Sequence record: MG592671.1
DNA length: 64,000 nucleotides
Strand: one strand, 5' to 3'
Positions 42,740 through 58,077 of the stretch are shown piece after piece. Positions within the stretch are counted from its first letter, which is position 1. Every line of letters begins with the position of its first letter. The position numbers were made by a program, and so were the translations under genes. A model generated the notes under the pieces. It was not told the DNA's origin, did no database searches, and saw nothing but the letters and a program-made list of their open reading frames with translations.

Positions 42740-42769
42740 TGTTACAGCCCTAAAATTAAATGTTATAAT
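42740..42769 (+). promoter_or_regulatory. Phage promoter
   Basis: TGTTACA-N14-TGTTATAAT. Confidence 0.75.
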
Positions 42770-42825: not shown

Positions 42826-43107
42826 ATGGCAAAAGATAATTCTCGTCAGGCTGCAATGAATAACTCAGAACGTGTTGCATCGCTTAAATCCCTGCGAAAA
42901 GCTGGTGTTATCGATCGAGCTACTTTTCGAATGATTGCAAAGCAGAAAGGCCTAAGTTGTGCTCGCACGCCAATCACTAACACTGGCGGTAAAGATGGTG
43001 GTCATCGTGTTCCAGAAATGCCTAAGTTTTTAGATGTGGACGGCAAAGAAGACAACACCCGTTGGGTGAGTGTTGGCTCTCAGCCAGCAGTGCGTTTCAC
43101 TAAGTAA
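42826..43107 (+). CDS. Small basic protein
   Basis: SD AAGGA; co-transcribed with the downstream structured RNA. Confidence 0.7.
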   Translation: MAKDNSRQAAMNNSERVASLKSLRKAGVIDRATFRMIAKQKGLSCARTPITNTGGKDGGHRVPEMPKFLDVDGKEDNTRWVSVGSQPAVRFTK

Positions 43108-43719
43108 TACTGATAGTGCTTGGAGTTAAATCCCAGGCATTACTAGAACTGGTTCTAATCACCAGTAGAGGCTCGAGACTCTAAAACGTTAGCAGCTCCT
43201 CCTACTGTGAGGCTTAAGGTGAAACTGAAAAGTCTCTCAGTAAGATACAGGACGTAGTAAAAGTACGAAGTGTAACAGAATGCGCAGTCTGATCAATAAG
43301 AGAGGTTGCTATAGCTGCGGACTGGTATAACTGGTATATTCTAGTAATAGATATATTAGATCAGTTTAGTGGCAACGTGGGTTCGACTCCCATGTGAGAT
43401 CACACTAAGTATTAGAGGAGATACGTCGCTCCTAGTGTTGACGGCATAACTTACTTGCCAGAGCTGAATAAATGTCATGTAGTACCGCTGTCCGAAAGGA
43501 CAGCACATTAACAGAATTTTATAAATATCATTGTACTTAATTAAAAGAATTTAAAACAAGGAAATTGTCGATGCACGTATCAGTTACTAAATCTAGTTCG
43601 TTTAGTAAGGGAACTAAATGGTTCTCCTGGATACTAGTGCCTGAAAATTGTCGACTGATAGCATAACCTCCTTTTTGTTTTGCGCTATTAAGCCGATGAT
43701 TGTTTCATCGGCTTATTTT
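43108..43719 (+). ncRNA. Large (~610 nt) structured non-coding region with a T-arm, ending in a terminator
   Basis: No ORF in the track; more than 12 helices including 10-bp long-range pairs, a GAAA tetraloop and GGGTTCGACTCCC. Confidence 0.7.
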
Positions 43720-45236: not shown

Positions 45237-45441
45237 TTTTATCAAAGTCTGGTGTGAATATAATATCAGCGGATCGTTTGGTGGAAACAACAACGAAGAA
45301 GTGTTAGAGTACAACGGTGATTCAGAAGTTGACGATATTGATCAACTAGTTCTTGATTTTATGAAGCGCAAAACAAACCTAACAGAAGAAGAGCTAGAAG
45401 ATCTTCATGGTTGGGAATGGCTTGTAATGGAAGAACTATAA
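45226..45441 (+). CDS. hypothetical protein
   Basis: ORF. Confidence 0.65.
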   Translation: MASNFIKVWCEYNISGSFGGNNNEEVLEYNGDSEVDDIDQLVLDFMKRKTNLTEEELEDLHGWEWLVMEEL

Positions 45442-45450
45442 TAAAAAATT

Positions 45451-45542
45451 GGCGGGTTGGTAGAGTTTGGCTTATTGCACCTGACTTGAAATCAGGCGAA
45501 CCTTAAACGGTTCCGAGGGTTCGAATCCCTCACCCGCTTCCA
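45451..45542 (+). tRNA. tRNA-Ser(UGA)
   Basis: Class II cloverleaf, loop CTTGAAA, CCA; discriminator U. Confidence 0.9.
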
Positions 45543-45544
45543 AT

Positions 45545-45620
45545 GCAGGGATAGCTCAGTAGGTAGAGCACGTGATTGAAAATCACGGTCGCGCCAGTTC
45601 AATTCTGGCTCCTTGCACCA
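45545..45620 (+). tRNA. tRNA-Phe(GAA)
   Basis: 76 nt, loop TTGAAAA, CCA. Confidence 0.92.
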
Positions 45621-45723
45621 ACAGTGCGTACTCCTCTAATACACCTCGGTAATATTACGTTTACGCCTTCTTAATTTGTTAGTCTGTGATGGAAAAGAAA
45701 AATAATCTCAAGGAGATAAAACA

Positions 45724-45930
45724 ATGGCTAAATCCTATGTACAGATCAAGTACCTTACAGTAAGCGAACTTGATAAACTAAATGACAAGCGTTTAGTGGA
45801 AGTGCTAAAAGTTGCTCGTAAACACTTCAAGATTCTTGAAGCTGGTGAATTTACTGTTGACGAAGTTGCGTCAGCTGAAACATACCACAACCAAGTCAAA
45901 GCTATTAGCGAGACTCGTAGTAACGTATAG
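45724..45930 (+). CDS. hypothetical protein
   Basis: SD AAGGAG. Confidence 0.7.
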   Translation: MAKSYVQIKYLTVSELDKLNDKRLVEVLKVARKHFKILEAGEFTVDEVASAETYHNQVKAISETRSNV

Positions 45931-45942
45931 TAATCTACGTAC

Positions 45943-46031
45943 AGGGAATGTTCTTGTCAGCGGTCTCCAAAACCGTCGAGAATAAACAGACTTGTGGTGC
46001 TCTAGGGGTTCGATTCCTCCATTCCCTGCCA
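45943..46031 (+). tRNA. Atypical tRNA-Trp(CCA) lacking a normal D-arm
   Basis: Acceptor AGGGAAT/ATTCCCT-G-CCA, loop CTCCAAA, T-loop TTCGATT; only ~10 nt where the D-arm should be. Confidence 0.65.
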
Positions 46032-46047
46032 AATTTTATAAGATATT

Positions 46048-46269
46048 ATGAAAAGTTATAAAAGTAATTGCTTATTTGAAGCAATAAAACTACGATTTAA
46101 AATACCTAACAGTTCATTTAAAATGAAGTGGACAGAACAAAGTTGGATATTCCCTCATTGTTATGTTGAGACCGAAACGCATAAGATTGCTTTTGTTGGA
46201 TTATATTCCGATGAACCACCTTTAGCCCATTTTTGGTACATAGGTAGAATAAAAAGTAGATTGAAATAA
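46048..46269 (+). CDS. hypothetical protein
   Basis: ORF between tRNAs. Confidence 0.6.
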   Translation: MKSYKSNCLFEAIKLRFKIPNSSFKMKWTEQSWIFPHCYVETETHKIAFVGLYSDEPPLAHFWYIGRIKSRLK

Positions 46270-46272
46270 TTC

Positions 46273-46362
46273 GGAGGCATGGCAGAGCGGCTTATCGCGC
46301 ACCCCTGCTAAGGGTGTAGACCTTAATAGGTCTCGTTGGTTCAAATCCAACTGCCTCCGCCA
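46273..46362 (+). tRNA. tRNA-Ser(GCU)
   Basis: Class II, loop CTGCTAA, G73-CCA. Confidence 0.93.
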
Positions 46363-46364
46363 AT

Positions 46365-46453
46365 AGAGAGATGACTGAGTGGCTTAAGGTACTCGCTTGG
46401 AAAGCGAGAGGAGGCATAGCTTCCCGCAGGTTCGAATCCTGTTCTCTCTGCCA
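46365..46453 (+). tRNA. tRNA-Ser(GGA)
   Basis: Class II, loop TTGGAAA, G73-CCA. Confidence 0.93.
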
Positions 46454-46478
46454 ATATATTTTTAAACAAGGACTTAAT

Positions 46479-46724
46479 ATGTTCGTAGTAATTTTTGGTC
46501 AACCAGGTTGCCCATTCTGCACAAAAGCAGTAGATCTAGCTGAAAAATATAAAACAGAGCGCGATGATTTCAACTATCGTTATGTTGATATCAAAGCAGA
46601 AGGCATTAGCAAAGCTGATCTTTCAAAAACAGTAGGTGAAGAAGTGACCACAGTGCCACAAATCTTCATTGATCAAACACCAATTGGTGGTTACACGCAA
46701 TTTGAAGCATACAATTTAGACTAG
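46479..46724 (+). CDS. grxA: Glutaredoxin 1
   Basis: GQPGCPFC, TVPQIF, IGGY; start corrected to ATG46479. Confidence 0.93.
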   Translation: MFVVIFGQPGCPFCTKAVDLAEKYKTERDDFNYRYVDIKAEGISKADLSKTVGEEVTTVPQIFIDQTPIGGYTQFEAYNLD

Positions 46725-46738
46725 GAGTAAAACAGCAA

Positions 46739-47194
46739 GTGGAACACGTCATTACGTTCCTTCAGGATTACCTGTCCTGGATCATGAACGGTGTATCGAT
46801 GGTGGCAGCATATTGTCTTTCTAATCAGAGAGCAGTCGTTGGTCGATACTTAGGTGCAACAGGTGCATCTCTTTTTATATTATACGGCGTGGTGACAAAT
46901 CAGCCTGCTTTTGTGGTAGCTGATATCATCTTCCTGTACATTTACATTAGTGCAGTTTTGAAGTTCAATAAGAAACGAGATTCTTATCGTGAAAAAGCAG
47001 CGGATGATGAAGAAACTATTGCTCAAATGCGAAAGATCATCAAACGTGCTAATACAATTGAATTAGAAATTCTTGAAACACGTATTGGTAAGCAAACGAA
47101 AAAGAAACTTGAACTCCGTAAATCATTACAGAAGCAACTTTATATTCTGTTGAAGATTGGCGAAAAGATTGAAAATGACATCGAGGACGAGTAA
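46739..47194 (+). CDS. Membrane protein with a C-terminal coiled coil
   Basis: Three short TM segments; SD AGGAG. Confidence 0.65.
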   Translation: MEHVITFLQDYLSWIMNGVSMVAAYCLSNQRAVVGRYLGATGASLFILYGVVTNQPAFVVADIIFLYIYISAVLKFNKKRDSYREKAADDEETIAQMRKIIKRANTIELEILETRIGKQTKKKLELRKSLQKQLYILLKIGEKIENDIEDE

Positions 47195-47208
47195 AATCGT
47201 CCTTTTTT
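47184..47208 (+). terminator. Terminator
   Basis: AGGACGA-GTAAAA-TCGTCCTTTTTT. Confidence 0.75.
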
Positions 47209-47223
47209 GTGACTAAAATTTAT

Positions 47224-47342
47224 GGGCTCATGGCGAAGCGGGATCGCGATTTAGTTTAGTACCTAGATCTAGGAGTACGCATCCGCAACACTCTTAACCG
47301 GCATGATCGGTGACGTTGGTTCGAATCCAACTGAGTCCACTA
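47224..47342 (+). ncRNA. tRNA-like RNA with G3.U70/A73 and a replaced anticodon arm
   Basis: GGGCTCA/TGAGTCC-A-CTA, D-arm and T-arm present. Confidence 0.65.
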
Positions 47343-47349
47343 TTAACTT

Positions 47350-47568
47350 GTCGAGCTGGAAAACAAAGCCTCTGAAACTGTAAAGCCTCCACAAGGTTAA
47401 CAGATTGTAGAAGATTCGTTATACTAAGAGAATCAGGGGAGATAATGTTTGGTCAGAGTAACAAATAGATATGGAATATTAGAGGAAAAGCTAGTAGACA
47501 GTGGAACTACTTGCAGAACTCTTTTAAGACGTTGAAACTACGGGGTTCGATTCCTCGTCTCGGCACAA
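47350..47568 (+). ncRNA. 219-nt RNA with tRNA-like termini
   Basis: GTCGAG/CTCGGC-A-CAA; T-arm CGGGG-TTCGATT-CCTCG. Confidence 0.55.
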
Positions 47569-47572
47569 AAAA

Positions 47573-47664
47573 GGAATACAATCGAAAAAGGGCTTGTAGT
47601 AGGCACTGAGACCCAGAAGCCCTGAAATACCCATTCAGATCGTCTGTAAGCAGTGCTGTATTCC
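47573..47664 (+). ncRNA. 92-nt pseudoknotted RNA element
   Basis: GGAATACA/TGTATTCC, AGGGCTT/AAGCCCT, GCACTG/CAGTGC. Confidence 0.55.
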
Positions 47665-47674
47665 TATTAACTAT

Positions 47675-47969
47675 GCCCCTGATGTTCAATACTTGAATAA
47701 GGGAATCCCTGTAAGGCTGGAGTCACCCGGAGAGACAGATTACGATACTATATCACTCACTAATACACTGGATCCAGATCGCGTGTTCGTGACTGTGACG
47801 GTAGTATAGTACGTGTCGTAAAGAGATGATTCCTGTGATACGGTATAAGCTGGTGTAGAACTCGCTCGTGAAGGTAGACTGAAAGCGGACCAAGTGTGAC
47901 TACTTGGCAAAATCCAGGAGTATGTTGAGACTATGAGTTGGGTGGTTCGATTCCACGCCAGGGGCAACA
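47675..47969 (+). ncRNA. ~295-nt RNA with tRNA-like termini
   Basis: GCCCCTG/CAGGGGC-A, T-arm GTGG-TTCGATT-CCAC, internal helices. Confidence 0.65.
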
Positions 47970-48032
47970 ATTCAGGATAACGCAAACGCATTATCCTCAT
48001 TAATATGTGTTAATATAATACAACAACATTAT

Positions 48033-48103
48033 CCCCGTTCCCTAACGTGACACTACAGAAATAATAGAGTTGCTGGACGTTCGAATCGTCAAGCGGGGTC
48101 TAA
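48033..48103 (+). pseudogene. Degenerate tRNA-like element
   Basis: CCCCGTT/AGCGGGG and GACG-TTCGAAT-CGTC only. Confidence 0.45.
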
Positions 48104-48131
48104 TCATCCTTAATATCAAAGGTACTTCATA

Positions 48132-48869
48132 ATGGATAATATCCTTCTGTTCGCTGGACACAACACGTCAAAACGTGGCGGCATGGCCGATTTCGTTGCT
48201 GCATTTAGTTCTGTTTATGCAGCACAAAAGTTTATTGAAAACGAGAACACCCAACACACCCTGCTTGACACACTCCCAAGTTTACAGTGGGCACATTTGT
48301 ATAACACAAATGAAGGTCGTATTGTGCAGAAAGGCAAGATCGAGATCTGGGGTCGTGAAGATATTGGAAATGAAGATGATGAAGAGACTAAGTTCACATG
48401 GTCACCGTGTGATGATGAAAAGGATCTTCAACCTCTAATGGTTCAAGCAGCTAACGACAATAGTGCTCGTGAAAAGGCCGAAGAAGAACGTATTGCTAAA
48501 GAAGAAGCAAAACTTGCTGCTGAACAGGCTATTGAAGATTCGGTTGCTAATACTATCATTCGCGTAGTTCCCTTTGATCTAGGCGTTATTGACTCTGTAG
48601 TTGATGAAATTGAAGTTCAATTAGAGTTTGCATTTAATCTTGAAGCAATGAAGCAAGAAGGTGAAATCACCAATCGACACGTAAAAGTATTGACTATTTC
48701 ATTTTCAGATGAAGATAAAGCTCTACTTGAGAGTATGGGTGGTCCTAGTGCGCCAGGTCATTGGGTAAGTAAAGCTCAGCAGCATTTTGATGACGAAATG
48801 ATCATGGCATTTTTTGAAAACGAAGTTCTAACCGAGGACGAAGTTAGCTCAGTAGCAGAGGTAGCTTAA
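48132..48869 (+). CDS. Acidic hypothetical protein
   Basis: 245-aa ORF. Confidence 0.8.
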   Translation: MDNILLFAGHNTSKRGGMADFVAAFSSVYAAQKFIENENTQHTLLDTLPSLQWAHLYNTNEGRIVQKGKIEIWGREDIGNEDDEETKFTWSPCDDEKDLQPLMVQAANDNSAREKAEEERIAKEEAKLAAEQAIEDSVANTIIRVVPFDLGVIDSVVDEIEVQLEFAFNLEAMKQEGEITNRHVKVLTISFSDEDKALLESMGGPSAPGHWVSKAQQHFDDEMIMAFFENEVLTEDEVSSVAEVA

Positions 48870-49237: not shown

Positions 49238-49460
49238 CGGGATATACTGAAAAGGGCATCTCCGAAGCTATCATCCTAGGAAATGTGGCGATCATTGTTG
49301 TCGGTTATTAGGTATATTCAAGTCTACTCCGAAAGCACGGGCTGACGCGGGAGCGTTGGGCGAAGTAGAGGTTCAATTCCTCTAGCACACTTGATAACAA
49401 ATCGGGAGAGTGTGTTCTGGGTGAAATATTAGGGTGCGAGTCCCTTAAGTAGACGCCCGT
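49237..49460 (+). ncRNA. 224-nt structured RNA with a permuted tRNA-like domain
   Basis: T-arm followed by GCACACT/AGTGTGT hairpin; closed by GTCTACT/AGTAGAC and ACGGG/CCCGT. Confidence 0.6.
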
Positions 49461-51736: not shown

Positions 51737-51983
51737 TCCCGGCTATCATGTTACCCTTATAGATAAAGGTTCACTAGGTGAGCTTTCAAAGATCTTAGAG
51801 GAAATCAACGAAGCTATTGATGCGGAAAAACAGGGTTGTAAAATTATGACCCTTATTGAACTATCTGATATGATAGGAGCAACAAAGCGCTACCTTGAAA
51901 AACATCATCCTGATATAACACTTGACGATTTGCTAACAATGGCAGATATTACACGTCGCGCATTTGAGAACGGACACAGATAA
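51729..51983 (+). CDS. MazG-like all-alpha pyrophosphatase-like protein
   Basis: SKILEE..E..DA and IELSDMIGA acidic pattern. Confidence 0.5.
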   Translation: MNNPGYHVTLIDKGSLGELSKILEEINEAIDAEKQGCKIMTLIELSDMIGATKRYLEKHHPDITLDDLLTMADITRRAFENGHR

Positions 51984-52540
51984 TGAATATAGACACATCG
52001 CTTATTTTTCAGGCCATAAAACACTACGAAGAGTATGGCTATAATATGGTCACTGTTCCTATGTTAGTAGATGAAGAAGCATCTAGGCTAACAAAGCCTA
52101 AGGGATGCAAAGATCTATATCATAAAGATAAAGTCTACGTAGCATCTGCTGAACAGAGTTTTATCCAGTTGTATAACGAAGGTGAGCTAATGACAGGAAA
52201 ATATATGGCATTAACTCCTTGTTATAGAGATGAACCTGAATTAGATGATACACACTTCAATATCTTTTTGAAGCTAGAACTAATCAAAGTTTATCGAGAA
52301 GGCTATAAACCAGGTGCCTCTGTTGTGTTAGATGATGCATATGATTTCTTTAAGCCATTAGCAAAATACAACACAAAACTTGTTAGTTTTGGAAATAATA
52401 ATCACGATATAGAAATAAATGGACTGGAAGTAGGCTCGTATGGATATCGTCAGTTCTCTGATGGTACATGGTACGTTTACGGAACAGGAATAGCTGAGCC
52501 AAGACTTAGTTACGCATTAGGGAAATCCAATGACGAATGA
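51983..52540 (+). CDS. Stand-alone class II aminoacyl-tRNA synthetase-like catalytic core
   Basis: VASAEQ, motif 2 PCYRDE..H..F-KLE, IEINGLEVGS, motif 3 GTGIAEPRL; no anticodon-binding domain. Confidence 0.7.
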   Translation: MNIDTSLIFQAIKHYEEYGYNMVTVPMLVDEEASRLTKPKGCKDLYHKDKVYVASAEQSFIQLYNEGELMTGKYMALTPCYRDEPELDDTHFNIFLKLELIKVYREGYKPGASVVLDDAYDFFKPLAKYNTKLVSFGNNNHDIEINGLEVGSYGYRQFSDGTWYVYGTGIAEPRLSYALGKSNDE

Positions 52541-52797: not shown

Positions 52798-53817
52798 ATG
52801 AAACATTATACTTATTGGATTATAGATACTGTAAATGCTATGTATTACCACGGTGTTCATAGCGATAATGATCCAGAAAATATCCATCACTACTCTGGGT
52901 CTTCTAAGTCACTGACATCAGCTATTCAACAATACGGAATATCAAATTTTATAAAGAGAGTTGAGCGTTATTTTGATACTAGGGAAGCAGCTAATAAGTG
53001 GGAAGCAACAGTACATAAGCGATTAGATGTAAAAAACCATAATAAATTTTATAACAATAATAATGCATCAGAAGATTTTACTGCCTACAATAAAGTTACA
53101 GTTAGAGATACAAGCGGTAATATATTTTCGGTAGATAAAAATGACAAAAGATATATTAGTGGTGAACTTGTTCATAATAATTTAGGTAAGCACATTGTAA
53201 TTGATTCAAATGGTGATGCGTTTAAAATATTAGCTAGTGATGAAAGATTTGTAAGTGGGGAGCTAAAAGACAGATTATCAGGAAAAGTTATCGTCAAAGA
53301 CGAAAACGATAATAATATTTTAGTAGAAACTACAGATACAAAATATTTAAGAGGTGAATACACCCACATTAATGCTGGTGTGGTAACAGTTAAGGATACA
53401 AACGGAAATACTATGCGGGTTTCAACAGACGATCCTAGATATATTTCAGGAGAGCTTGTTCATCTAACCACAGGGCGTGTGACTGTAAAAGATAAAGCAG
53501 GAAATCACATACAAGTAGACATTGATGATCCAAGAATTGATAATGGCGAGTTTACATATCTACAAGTTGGTAAAGTTCCAGTCAAAGATGAGAATGGTAC
53601 TATATTCCAAGTTGATGCCACTGACCCTAGATATATTTCAGGGGAATTAACACATCATCTTAAGGGGATTTCCAATAGTCACAAAGATAGAATTTGGATA
53701 ACTAATCCTATATTAAAGAAGAACAAGCGCGTTCTTAAAGATGATTTGGATTCTTGGTTACTGAAATCTGATTGGACTAAAGGTCGTAAAACTTACGCAA
53801 AAATAAAGGAATTATAA
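52798..53817 (+). mobile_element. GIY-YIG (Seg-like) homing endonuclease with six ~32-aa repeats
   Basis: HYTYWI...YYHGVH...YSGS; repeats VKD--G----V---DPRY-SGEL; own promoter at 52756. Confidence 0.8.
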
Positions 53818-55067
53818 TGTCTAAAGAAATAAAGAATGTAATAGTACAGCATTATGCTGGTAGCATATCTTATGGCACATCACTTCCTACGAGTGATACT
53901 GATATCCGCGGTATCTTCTGTGCTGGTGAAGAAAATATACGTACGCCGTTCTTTCCTATCCGTGAACAAACACTAGAAGATGAAGAAGATGGTAAGCTAT
54001 ATGAGCTTAGTAATTTCCTTAAGTTATACACTGATGGTAACCCGAATATCCTAGAATCTCTATGGGTAGATGATAGACACATCATTGAAGGTTCAGAAGC
54101 ATACGATATTCTTACTGAACACAGGCAAACTCTGCTGTCTAAAAAGGTTGCATTCACTTATAGCGGCTACGCTATTTCGCAACTACATCGTATCAAAGGC
54201 CACAACAAGTACATCAATAACCCAGCTAAAGAGACGCCACCACGTCAAATTGACTTTGTGAAGCTAGTTCATAACTTTACAGACAAAAAGATCTTTAAGA
54301 TCAATATGGAAGATATCCAAAACGGATACAGGTTAATACCATACGGTGGTGATTTATTTGGTGTTTATGAATCCCCGGGTTCCCAAACATTCGATCACTT
54401 GTTCACATTGAACACTAATTGTGATGCAGATCTAAGTGGCTTCTACACAAAGACTCGAACATTCACAGATAAGATAGCTGGATTCATTACAGGTAATCCT
54501 GATTTTGGAACACGCAAACTCCCACTGTTCATTGTATCGTTTAACCGTGAAGGTTACAAGAAATCAAAAGAGCATTGGAAATCTTACTGGAGCTGGAAGC
54601 GTAATCGTAACGAAGCACGACGTTTGCTTGAAGAAGAAAACGGATACGATACAAAACACGCTCAACATTTGGTAAGACTGCTGAATATGGCTGAAGAAAT
54701 CCTAACTGATGGTATAGTAAAAGTGTTCCGCCCTGATCGAGAATTATTATTAGATATTCGACATGGTAAGTTCTCTTTTGATGAGCTTATGGAAATGGTT
54801 GAAGGTAAGGATGAATACATCCGTGGAGAGTTGTACAAGAAATCTCCGCTACCAAAAGCACCTGATATCAAACTAGCTTCTAAAGTTCTCATAGATGCTC
54901 AAGATTGTTTCTGGAAAGAGCCAACAAAAGAAAAGCGTATTCAGAAAGCCAAAGATCGCATGTTTGATCGTCATCAAAAAGAAGAAGATCGCCGTGAAGC
55001 ACGTTTCTGTGAAAACATGGAACGACTACAAGAAAATCTGAAAGGTGATGATAATGAATCAGAATAG
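53817..55067 (+). CDS. RlaP-like (Nuc-transf) Pol-beta nucleotidyltransferase
   Basis: AGSISYGTSLPTSDTDIRGIF, GNPNILE, YDTKHAQHLVRL. Confidence 0.85.
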   Translation: MSKEIKNVIVQHYAGSISYGTSLPTSDTDIRGIFCAGEENIRTPFFPIREQTLEDEEDGKLYELSNFLKLYTDGNPNILESLWVDDRHIIEGSEAYDILTEHRQTLLSKKVAFTYSGYAISQLHRIKGHNKYINNPAKETPPRQIDFVKLVHNFTDKKIFKINMEDIQNGYRLIPYGGDLFGVYESPGSQTFDHLFTLNTNCDADLSGFYTKTRTFTDKIAGFITGNPDFGTRKLPLFIVSFNREGYKKSKEHWKSYWSWKRNRNEARRLLEEENGYDTKHAQHLVRLLNMAEEILTDGIVKVFRPDRELLLDIRHGKFSFDELMEMVEGKDEYIRGELYKKSPLPKAPDIKLASKVLIDAQDCFWKEPTKEKRIQKAKDRMFDRHQKEEDRREARFCENMERLQENLKGDDNESE

Positions 55068-57132: not shown

Positions 57133-57606
57133 ATGCAAGAGATCGAGCGTAAGTTTTTACCAGCACCTGGTGCAGTAATCCCGTTTACTTCAGATAATGA
57201 AGAAATCATCCAAATGTACATCCATGAAGAAGGCGAAGATACTGTATGTCGTTTACGTCTTATTGATGGCCACAAAGCGTTAATCACTCAGAAAGACAAA
57301 AGTCTAGATGGCGGGTTCTCATGTAATGAGCTTGAATCTCGTATCCCATATCATATAGGGTTAGTGATGTATGATGCGTGTGGTAATCCGCCTATCATCA
57401 AAGAACGTTATCGTATCCCACACGGCGAGTTAACTTTCGAAGTAGATGTATTTTCTGATCACAATAAAGGCTTAGTCCTTATTGAAATCGAAATGCCTTC
57501 TAAAGATACAGTTATCACGTTACCTGACTGGGTAGGCGAAGAAGTAACTTTAGATCCACGTTATAAAAACGTTAATCTAATAAAAAATCCATATGAACTA
57601 TGGTAA
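57133..57606 (+). CDS. CYTH (triphosphate tunnel metalloenzyme) protein
   Basis: QEIERKFL, RLR, K-RY, EVD-F, IEIE, EEVT-DPRYKN. Confidence 0.9.
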   Translation: MQEIERKFLPAPGAVIPFTSDNEEIIQMYIHEEGEDTVCRLRLIDGHKALITQKDKSLDGGFSCNELESRIPYHIGLVMYDACGNPPIIKERYRIPHGELTFEVDVFSDHNKGLVLIEIEMPSKDTVITLPDWVGEEVTLDPRYKNVNLIKNPYELW

Positions 57607-57612
57607 ACTAAT

Positions 57613-57785
57613 TTAAGCAGCAACTCGTGGTAGGGGAATGTAGACCCGCCTTGGGGAATCTAGGAGAGCTCAGAGGATACTTGCGGCACAGTTGAAGAGT
57701 GTTCCCTAATTCACGGGACGTGTAGCCTTAATGGCGAAGTGTAGACTGTTACTGGTTCAAGTCCAGTCCATCGAACGCTGCTTAA
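57613..57785 (+). ncRNA. tRNA-Leu-like RNA, copy 1 (expanded anticodon domain, extended acceptor)
   Basis: TTAAGCAGC/GCTGCTTAA; T-arm ACTGG-TTCAAGT-CCAGT. Confidence 0.6.
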
Positions 57786-57789
57786 TAAA

Positions 57790-57950
57790 ATGAAATACAG
57801 CAACTCGTTGTGGTGAAACTGGTAGACGCGCCTGGTTGGTACCTGCGTTGACTACCCCTGTAAAAAAAGGGGTCATAGACAATGGGACGCCCGGGATCCT
57901 TGTGAAAGGGGAGTGCAGGTTCGAGTCCTGTCTTCGAACGCTGTGTTCAT
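57790..57950 (+). ncRNA. tRNA-Leu-like RNA, copy 2
   Basis: D-arm GTGGTGAAACTGGTAGACGCG, V-arm, T-arm GCAGG-TTCGAGT-CCTGT; shares terminal motifs with copy 1. Confidence 0.65.
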
Positions 57951-57953
57951 ACT

Positions 57954-58063
57954 TGAGAAGATCATAAACAAAATTTGGTACGCGCTTCAGTTGTGAGGTT
58001 CAATTCCTCGAGGTTCTAGGTGACCAACGTCGACGTAGAGGTTCGAATCCTCCTTTTCAACCA
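57954..58063 (+). ncRNA. 110-nt CCA-ending tRNA-like RNA with two T-loops
   Basis: TGAGAAG/CTTTTCA-A-CCA. Confidence 0.6.
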
Positions 58064-58077
58064 AAAAATAATAGGAT

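Follow-up and report, generated by a model that had tools for sequence, protein, structure and literature searches.

The tRNA island of Vibrio phage 2.275.O._10N.286.54.E11 (MG592671.1), a 349-kb jumbo phage whose host is Vibrio cyclitrophicus, encodes an RNA of ~292 nt, termed el3, in which tRNA-like ends surround ~250-258 nt. This RNA exists in infected cells, where RNA contigs show it as discrete, unspliced and more abundant than its surroundings, with ends that coincide with those of the predicted acceptor stem. el3 is not a tmRNA, nor is it a tRNA with an intron, and no known family includes it. On balance, we lean toward the view that el3 is a true gene whose product is a stable, tRNA-shaped RNA without a role in decoding, in which the minihelix of acceptor stem and T arm would act as a handle and the interior as the working part. 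Positions are given for the window, i.e., the whole stretch of 64,000 nucleotides that was analyzed; a window coordinate equals the record coordinate minus 124000. By megablast, the region 46400-48200 is identical (100%) to the phage record.

The row el1-el4 and the ends of el3

el3 (47675-47966) lies on the plus strand, as do all neighboring genes of the tRNA island, within a 790-nt gap free of coding sequences (47340-48131, GenBank annotation) that comes right after a feature annotated 'tRNA-OTHER'. The island extends 6 kb past the end of the window, and this further stretch carries genes for a CCA-adding enzyme and a peptidyl-tRNA hydrolase (Pth2). GIY-YIG and HNH nuclease genes are present in the tRNA-island region. 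With default settings, ARAGORN called 11 tRNAs in the window, none of them at el3. A scan for T arms that have an acceptor strand behind them and its complement further upstream, which also recovers the canonical tRNAs, placed el3 in a row of four tRNA-like genes, el1 to el4, with hairpin spacers between them (Table 1). All four have a U at position -1. A CCA is encoded by all ten canonical tRNAs of the window and by none of the four elements of the row. In the next island, the 3' trailers of six canonical tRNAs were read, and three of them (those of Gly, Ile and Leu) likewise lack an exact encoded CCA, so that the phage requires a CCA-adding enzyme even apart from el1-el4.

A terminator-like hairpin at 47183-47204 precedes the row. 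The motif AATGTTATAATA is repeated at 42759, 58597 and 59935 of the window and at 373, 1246, 1680 and 18565 of L004, among other places. Those copies whose flanks were read have TAAGC ~6-10 nt downstream, and several are located shortly 5' of tRNA genes; the motif is probably the phage's own promoter consensus. No copy was found directly upstream of el1-el4.

Table 1 Features of el3 and of the row to which it belongs (window coordinates)
Feature	Position	Strand	Remarks
el1, first gene of the row	47224-47339	+	class-II tRNA-Leu(UAG)-like body, 31 extra nt at 37/38
el2, 218 nt, paralog of el3, 100 nt upstream	47349-47566	+	acceptor TGTCGAG/CTCGGCA, 6-bp T stem, discriminator C
Spacer hairpin between el2 and el3, GGAATACA ... 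TGTATTCC	47567-47674	+	RNA-depleted: 12.5 vs 120-234 on either side (run X6)
Leader motif CTATTAACT, 2 nt 5' of el3	47664-47672	+	same 9-mer abuts el2 (47340-47348)
el3 acceptor stem, 5' strand GCCCCTG	47675-47681	+	7/7 Watson-Crick with 47959-47965; RNA contig starts at 47674
el3 hairpin at D-arm position, TGTTCAA-TAC-TTGAATA	47683-47699	+	7-bp stem, 3-nt loop, no GG; predicted pair probability at least 0.8 (constrained fold)
el3 long irregular rod domain, nt 27-167	47701-47841	+	same predicted topology in unconstrained and constrained folds
Candidate rod helix GGGAATC/GATTCCT	47701-47707 / 47828-47834	+	7 bp, one G.U
Candidate rod helix TTACGATAC/GTGTCGTAA	47740-47748 / 47813-47821	+	9 bp, one U.G
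el3 second domain, nt 174-265	47848-47939	+	hairpin and two motifs, same order and spacing in el2
Second-domain hairpin CCAAGT(G)/(T)ACTTGG	47890-47896 / 47901-47907	+	kept in el2
Second-domain motifs ACTACTTG, then GTTGAGACTA 25 nt on	47899; 47924	+	common to el2
el3 T arm GGGTGG-TTCGATT-CCACGC	47940-47958	+	consensus TTCRANY-type loop
el3 acceptor stem, 3' strand CAGGGGC, and discriminator A (47966)	47959-47966	+	trailer ACA, no encoded CCA
el4, last of the row, degenerate 67-nt tRNA-like element	48033-48099	+	CCCCGTT/AGCGGGG; T arm GGACG-TTCGAAT-CGTCA

The ends of el3 are solid, and its specific internal pairings are candidates only, with several registers competing. An earlier note on this DNA, made from the letters alone, had described an RNA spanning 47675-47969 with the acceptor GCCCCTG/CAGGGGC-A and a T arm. 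Both are in the sequence and the start stands, but the 3' boundary is 47966; the last three nucleotides of the span, ACA, are trailer and not CCA. T arms are enriched on this strand: a loose definition finds 27 on the plus strand of the window versus ~5 in shuffles (five-fold) and 12 on the minus strand, and GTTCRAWTC occurs in 16 copies, all on the plus strand, with 3.0 expected. We estimate at ~0.05 the probability that a perfectly complementary 7-mer lies within 450 nt for any one T arm. The leader motif preceding el3 has only three exact copies in 64 kb, two of which occupy equivalent positions before el2 and el3.

The T stem of el3 can be read as four clean pairs or as six layers with one G.G. 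Because six nucleotides, not five, separate the T loop from the acceptor strand, acceptor and T stem add up to 13 stacked layers with one G.G, compared to 12 in canonical tRNAs, and el2 has the same 13-layer geometry. RNase P and EF-Tu measure the 12-bp acceptor/T geometry. The predicted minihelix of el3 departs from it, which would count against the explanation that we prefer. With the acceptor pairing at 7/7 positions, the T loop perfect and the D and anticodon parts unrecognizable, selection seems to act on the minihelix only.

RNA from infected cells and the interior of el3

Public runs from 2019, labelled as RNA libraries, contain the whole stretch, and to the region 45400-48200 we assigned the contigs of four such runs from infected cells. 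Two of the four are small-RNA libraries, since the Illumina small-RNA 5' adapter is attached to one contig. The evidence consists of assembled contigs and not of reads: they carry no strand, their ends and any CCA are approximate, and rare forms may drop out. In run X6, el3 is represented by a contig from 47674 to 47947 at a depth of 150, el1 by one from 47224 to 47331 (depth 554) and el2 by one from 47394 to 47566 (depth 234). The spacer stretch 47562-47655 reaches 12.5 in the same run, the stretch 3' of el3 reaches 16 and nearby mRNA 10-23; overall, a depth of 120-150 at el3 compares with 12-16 in both flanking spacers. In run X4, a single contig covers 47334-48100, up to the end of el4, where the depth falls from 287-390 to 19. 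In these libraries, el3 is 20-100x less abundant than the canonical tRNAs of the phage.

The el2 contig stops exactly at the predicted discriminator, 47566, and continues with three extra letters that misfit the genome, which has AAA there. Three misfitting letters are what a non-templated CCA would give; the letters themselves are not readable. No splice joint was found in the contigs of the four runs, which can drop rare forms, and el1, el2 and el3 were assembled unspliced, the el1 contig (47224-47331) being gapless. Contig depths relative to the flanks and the lack of joints thus mark the el3 RNA as real, enriched and unspliced. The central claim of the earlier note, a ~295-nt RNA with tRNA-like ends and a long non-tRNA interior, is borne out in that the element is transcribed and its RNA accumulates. 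Its hint at splicing is unsupported, because joints are missing from the contigs and no plausible mature tRNA can be assembled.

The interior is predicted to fold into two domains that follow the hairpin at the D-arm position. The three internal helices listed in the earlier note, GGGAATC/GATTCCT, TTACGATAC/GTGTCGTAA and CCAAGT/ACTTGG, can all be found in the sequence. The apical loop of the rod is predicted near 47771-47780, with competing helix registers within the rod. If no more than one G.U is allowed, 13 helices of el3 reach a length of 7 bp or more, compared to 5.4 in shuffles, and none of 300 shuffles reached 13. The individual internal helices are not significant alone, because a single 9-bp helix turns up in 31% of the shuffles, and the MFE z-score of el3 is a modest -1.76. 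An anticodon-like loop of 7 nt was not seen in the interior. A protein-coding el3 was rejected: its only open reading frames comprise 86 aa (minus strand) and 38 aa (plus strand), and neither of these short frames has a Pfam match. When 114 kb of phage sequence was searched for antisense targets, the matches to el1-el3 and to the spacer were 11-17 nt long and at chance level.

el2 and el3 are, as judged from their sequences, paralogs that share the leader and a 3' module. Their global alignment is better than that of 500 out of 500 shuffles (z ~4). In both, CAGATT is followed by ACTACTTG, then, exactly 25 nt on, by GTTGARACTA and finally by the T arm. The hairpin that ends in ACTACTTG reads GCUAGUAG...CUACUUGC in el2 and CCAAGUG...UACUUGG in el3, with one compensatory base-pair change at its base. 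The el2 interior has no folding signal (MFE z -0.22). RNAalifold on the pair was uninformative, because only two sequences were available and their 5' parts align poorly.

el1 scores 37.8 bits as a tRNA in Rfam and has 62 nt where a 17-nt anticodon arm would be expected. GenBank labels it 'tRNA-OTHER (TTA)', and ARAGORN in intron mode reads it as a tRNA-Leu(UAG) with a 31-nt insert at the archaeal/eukaryal position 37/38. Its MFE fold has three hairpins between the D and T arms, unlike the intron reading.

For el3 as a stable, tRNA-shaped RNA, we propose that el1-el4 would be transcribed as one precursor in which the acceptor/T-arm minihelix together with the U at -1 would serve the tRNA enzymes as a handle. 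The 5' end of el3 would be generated by RNase P, 3' trimming would halt at the discriminator, the CCA-adding enzyme that the phage encodes would cap the product, and the spacer hairpins would be discarded. The RNA would in this way gain tRNA-like stability for a payload consisting of the 250-nt interior, i.e., the 140-nt rod and the second domain. RNase P substrates beyond tRNA include pre-tmRNA, phage M3 RNA and the C4 RNA of P1/P7, which have tRNA-like features (PMC11143913). Genes for the phage CCA-adding enzyme, Pth2 and an RlaP RNA-repair nucleotidyltransferase may be counted for this explanation. Its weak points are the z-scores of -1.76 for el3 and -0.22 for el2, the low abundance relative to canonical tRNAs and the 13-layer minihelix.

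As to its role, one may speculate that el3 is a tRNA mimic that binds or titrates a tRNA-recognizing protein outside decoding; candidate partners could be a nuclease of the host that targets tRNAs, an enzyme of tRNA modification or repair, or a factor made by the phage. A more far-reaching version, which we offer tentatively and regard as unlikely, would make el2 and el3 the founders of 'giant tRNA-shaped RNAs' of phages, cut by RNase P and 3' trimming, tailed with CCA by the phage's own enzyme, possibly aminoacylated and acting as tRNA decoys or sponges in the conflict about the tRNAs of host and phage. If this were true, the persistence of el3 words in unrelated samples, described below, would reflect strong selection on el3. 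As summarized in PMC12482277, Vibrio phage 2.275.O reportedly changes, late in infection, from using the tRNA pool of the host to using its own (Yang et al. 2021). What phage tRNA clusters do is being actively re-examined, and the roles under discussion include codon supply, evasion of anticodon nucleases and persistence when the host tRNAs are degraded. With an RNA of 292 nt that keeps only the part of a tRNA read by processing enzymes, a cultivable host and public RNA data, the phage offers a tractable system for studying the role of such RNAs.

Known RNA classes and competing explanations

Among the features of a canonical elongator tRNA, el3 has the 7-bp acceptor stem and the T arm with a TTCRANY loop. 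Neither a D arm bearing G18G19 nor an anticodon arm closed by a 7-nt loop is present, and the Rfam tRNA model and default ARAGORN are silent. LeuRS recognition depends on tertiary elements of the tRNA (E. coli identity rules), and these are absent from el3, because the hairpin at the D position has a 3-nt loop and no G18G19. The Leu-like identity that the earlier note had drawn solely from G1-C2-C3/A73 hence finds no backing.

At gathering score, tRNA was the only Rfam family matched in the window. The tmRNA families gave no match at gathering score in the window or at E<=10 in 46400-48200, and permissive filters at E<=10 in the latter region returned nothing in el2-el4, no group I intron and no self-cleaving ribozyme. 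ARAGORN reported no tmRNA, neither by default nor in tmRNA mode at an 80% threshold. Both searches that the earlier note had proposed, ARAGORN in tmRNA mode and a covariance-model scan, were thus run and found none. The note was right that el3 lacks G3.U70 and an obvious tag frame: position 3:70 is C3-G70 (C47677 pairs with G47963), and no tag frame was found. A standard tmRNA was rejected on the basis of ARAGORN, Rfam and the C3-G70 pair. The tmRNA-like size and layout that had been described hold for the size and for the acceptor/T-arm minihelix but not for tmRNA-like function, with no ARAGORN or Rfam match. The earlier note had also named a standard tmRNA match, a group I match or a lack of transcription as findings that would speak against it; ARAGORN and Rfam were silent, and RNA contigs are present.

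The closest precedent of el3, by analogy, is provided by RNAs C and D of phage T4. These are small stable RNAs of the T4 tRNA cluster with unknown role (PMC3014915), classed as late RNAs and validated by Northern blot (PMC9697503). The genes of RNA D (119 nt) and RNA C (139 nt) adjoin tRNA-Arg. Like el3, both RNAs lie inside a phage tRNA cluster and accumulate as discrete stable RNAs; the T4 RNAs are transcribed together with tRNAs. At its 3' end, RNA C has, as el3 does, a T arm that fits the consensus (CCGGG-TTCGAAT-CCCGG), and after it an acceptor-like strand. Its plan is that of el3, in which the T arm is preceded by a small hairpin, then a long rod and then one more hairpin (fold z -4.6 for RNA C). 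However, RNA C has 139 nt compared to 292 nt, and blastn finds no sequence similarity, so the architectures are analogous only. From its annotated 5' end, RNA C forms no 7-bp acceptor stem, and a 6-bp stem arises only with the upstream RNA D 3' end in the precursor, whereas el3 closes with a perfect 7-bp stem. el3 is most aptly grouped with the stable tRNA-like RNAs that phage tRNA clusters encode, a poorly understood set of which it is a much larger variant.

Other systems share single traits with el3. In tmRNA (SsrA), which is of similar size, the two ends form acceptor and T arm around a large interior, but el3 has no G3.U70, tag frame or pseudoknot ring and matches no ARAGORN or Rfam model. 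YrlA RNAs are non-coding, in some cases phage-encoded, and mimic the T arm, the D arm and an acceptor-like stem; they bind proteins and do not decode. Like el3, they copy part of a tRNA, but their ends form a Ro-binding stem and the tRNA-like part is internal, whereas the ends of el3 form the acceptor stem. Such Y-RNA-like YrlA tRNA mimics of bacteria and phages are mentioned in PMC7765460. Rfam gave no YrlA match, and the annotation read, which covers 84 kb of the record, lists no Ro/Rsr gene. GOLLD and ROOL are large structured RNAs of unknown function that often occur beside phage or prophage tRNA genes. They resemble el3 in being large, structured and next to tRNA genes but exceed it two- to threefold in length and are covered by Rfam models of their own; neither gave a gathering-score match in the window nor was listed at E<=10 in 46400-48200.

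Homologs of el3 were sought in several collections. The 936-nt el region had no homolog by blastn among 50,697 phage records, and no T4-type phage was among the matches (down to ~65-70% identity). The only non-self match was a weak one of the spacer 47583-47648 to Bacteriophage DSS3_MAL1 (79% over 66 nt, E 5e-4). No el3 homolog was found by tblastn with the gene downstream of el3, nor in IMG/VR, either with the downstream gene and PhoH as queries or with six exact 20-26-mers of el3. In JGI metagenomes, a pattern built from the motif shared by el2 and el3 hit two high-GC bacterial loci, which were judged chance because the T arm alone matches, and an el3 20-mer match to a Rokuibacteriota MAG among GTDB genomes was likewise judged chance. 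Metagenomic contigs with the gene order DUF723 - aaRS-like gene have at most one tRNA-Pro and no el3-like element. The phage is distantly related to the Asteriusvirus jumbo phages (~30% protein identity). The syntenic region of the Asteriusvirus relative has no tRNA genes, which makes the tRNA island a plastic add-on.

Words of el3 were present in three further sequencing runs. In run X9, a sand metagenome, 7 of 28 sampled 31-mers of el3 occurred, compared to none of 63 sampled in 644 nt of flanks. The 936-nt query, which includes el1, el2, the spacer and el4, gave the same seven (7/91) as el3 alone, so these neighbors contributed no words in X9. Runs X20 and X21 contained 3 and 2 el3 words, respectively. 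Since 31-mers of el3 and not of its flanks occur in X9, X20 and X21, el3 would appear to be kept near-identical elsewhere while its neighbors are not. The pattern in these three unrelated environmental runs is compatible with two readings: el3 may be under selection while the islands around it are plastic, or the unit may be mobile. We count it, with due caution, for the explanation that we prefer.

The main rival, which we consider doubtful, holds that el3 is a decaying tRNA gene that, like el2 and el4, took insertions and lost its D and anticodon arms, so that its RNA, still made along with its neighbors and trimmed by tRNA enzymes owing to a minihelix that survived by chance, would be a by-product of processing with no function. 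The ~15 degenerate or expanded T-arm elements of many shapes in the islands look like gene birth and death, and the GIY-YIG and HNH nuclease genes in the same region, the el2 interior without folding signal, the missing encoded CCA in el1-el4 versus ten canonical tRNAs with CCA, and the tRNA-free syntenic region of Asteriusvirus point in the same direction. However, decay should strike acceptor and T loop no less than the other parts, yet el3 has both in perfect form and el2 has retained its acceptor, over distances of 200-290 nt. The el3 RNA also stands 10x over the spacer and mRNA background, and el3 words persist in three other samples where flank words do not.

It is rather improbable that el3 is a small selfish element, intron-like or other, with tRNA-like ends and moving between phage genomes. 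The word counts (7/28 of the el3 31-mers in X9, 3 in X20 and 2 in X21, as opposed to 0/63 flank 31-mers in X9) and the homing-nuclease genes inside the island would be in line with mobility. The same word pattern is, however, expected if related phages keep el3 beside different neighbors, and el3 has neither coding capacity nor a ribozyme match. Apart from the shared leader, it lacks terminal repeats and a target-site duplication, and the RNA contigs contain it in neither excised nor joined form.

Very little speaks for el3 as a precursor tRNA from which a large intron, either group I or removed by nuclease and ligase, would be excised to yield a normal tRNA. ARAGORN in intron mode does call el1 (31-nt insert) and 57804-57939 (48-nt insert) as tRNAs, and the phage has an RNA-repair-type gene (RlaP). 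Group I introns occur in bacterial tRNA genes such as cyanobacterial tRNA-Leu(UAA) and Azoarcus tRNA-Ile, with an insert of 200-250 nt between the tRNA ends, as in el3. In contrast to these genes, el3 has no catalytic-core match, no cloverleaf exons, the wrong splice-site nucleotides and no spliced RNA in the contigs. When introns of up to 400 nt were allowed, ARAGORN offered el3 only as a sub-threshold 'tRNA-Ala(GGC)' with a 196-nt insert, in which the anticodon stem forms 3/5 pairs and the D and variable arms are poor; the 5' exon and the intron both end in C, where group I needs U and G. With this mismatched model, no group I match in Rfam at E<=10, no joints in the RNA contigs and el1, el2 and el3 assembled in unspliced form, a group I or other intron was rejected.

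Barely credible, finally, is a divergent tmRNA-like RNA, charged by a synthetase other than AlaRS and serving trans-translation or peptide tagging: its size and acceptor/T-arm ends would fit, phage-encoded tmRNAs exist and a single frame stays open from the first nucleotide up to a UAG (nt 133-135), but such a 44-codon frame has a chance probability of ~0.12, there is neither a pseudoknot-flanked resume codon nor a canonical tag ending, and the C3-G70 pair and the silence of both ARAGORN at the 80% threshold and Rfam speak against it.

Other unusual RNAs and genes of the islands

The tRNA islands of the phage contain ~15 non-canonical T-arm elements of many shapes, and standard tRNA and tmRNA finders together with Rfam thus miss a sizeable share of the RNA genes in such islands. 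Further T-arm elements without a call lie in CDS-free gaps at 43377, 46004, 49367, 57751, 57915, 57994 and 58037 of the window and at 1425, 3894, 4290 and 4470 of L004; Rfam recognized nothing known in them.

By far the most abundant piece in the small-RNA run X6 (depth 13952) is a tRNA-like gene at 45943-46032, which was missed by both ARAGORN and Rfam. It has the tRNA-Trp hallmarks A1-U72, discriminator G and an encoded CCA, together with the anticodon arm GCGGU-CUCCAAA-ACCGU (anticodon CCA). Only 10 nt stand in the place of the D arm, and 27 nt lie between the anticodon and T arms.

At 57604-58065, two Leu-like elements with large inserts are arranged in tandem, both framed by the repeated flanks GCAGCAACTCGT ... 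TCGAACGCTG, and two more T arms follow (57994 and 58037). The second of the two elements, 57804-57939, is read by ARAGORN as a 'tRNA-Thr(GGU)' with a 48-nt intron, and the Rfam tRNA model gives it 18.5 bits. The stretches 49238-49400 of the window and 3594-3925 of L004 are long and CDS-free, have the 5' motif ACTGAAAAGGGCA in common and end in a T arm; judging by these shared features, they may be another paralogous pair of tRNA-like RNAs. A gap of ~290 nt at 43105-43400 also ends in a T arm.

Two protein-coding genes of the island deserve mention. The 185-aa protein encoded at 51983-52537 (+), annotated as hypothetical, matches PHROG 4806 'histidyl tRNA synthetase' (E 9e-59), and a profile of 34 of its homologs matches the SerRS catalytic core (E 1e-4). 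The arginines of class-II motif 2 (CYRdE) and motif 3 (GTGiAEPR) are invariant. It has 281 homologs at E<=1e-5; among the 120 matches listed, most are unnamed metagenomic proteins. By these profile matches, it looks like a minimal aaRS-core-like enzyme in the tRNA island. The gene at 53817-55064 (+), annotated 'nucleotidyltransferase', matches Pfam RlaP (RNA repair pathway Pol-beta family) with 42.9 bits and adjoins a gene that GenBank annotates as a GIY-YIG domain protein.

In L004, ARAGORN finds an unannotated tRNA-Val(AAC) at 1306-1378, which scores 28.4 bits in Rfam, just under the threshold. The annotated tRNA-Ser(ACT) at 6037-6116 of L004 is read by ARAGORN as a tRNA-Val(UAC) with a 5-nt insert.
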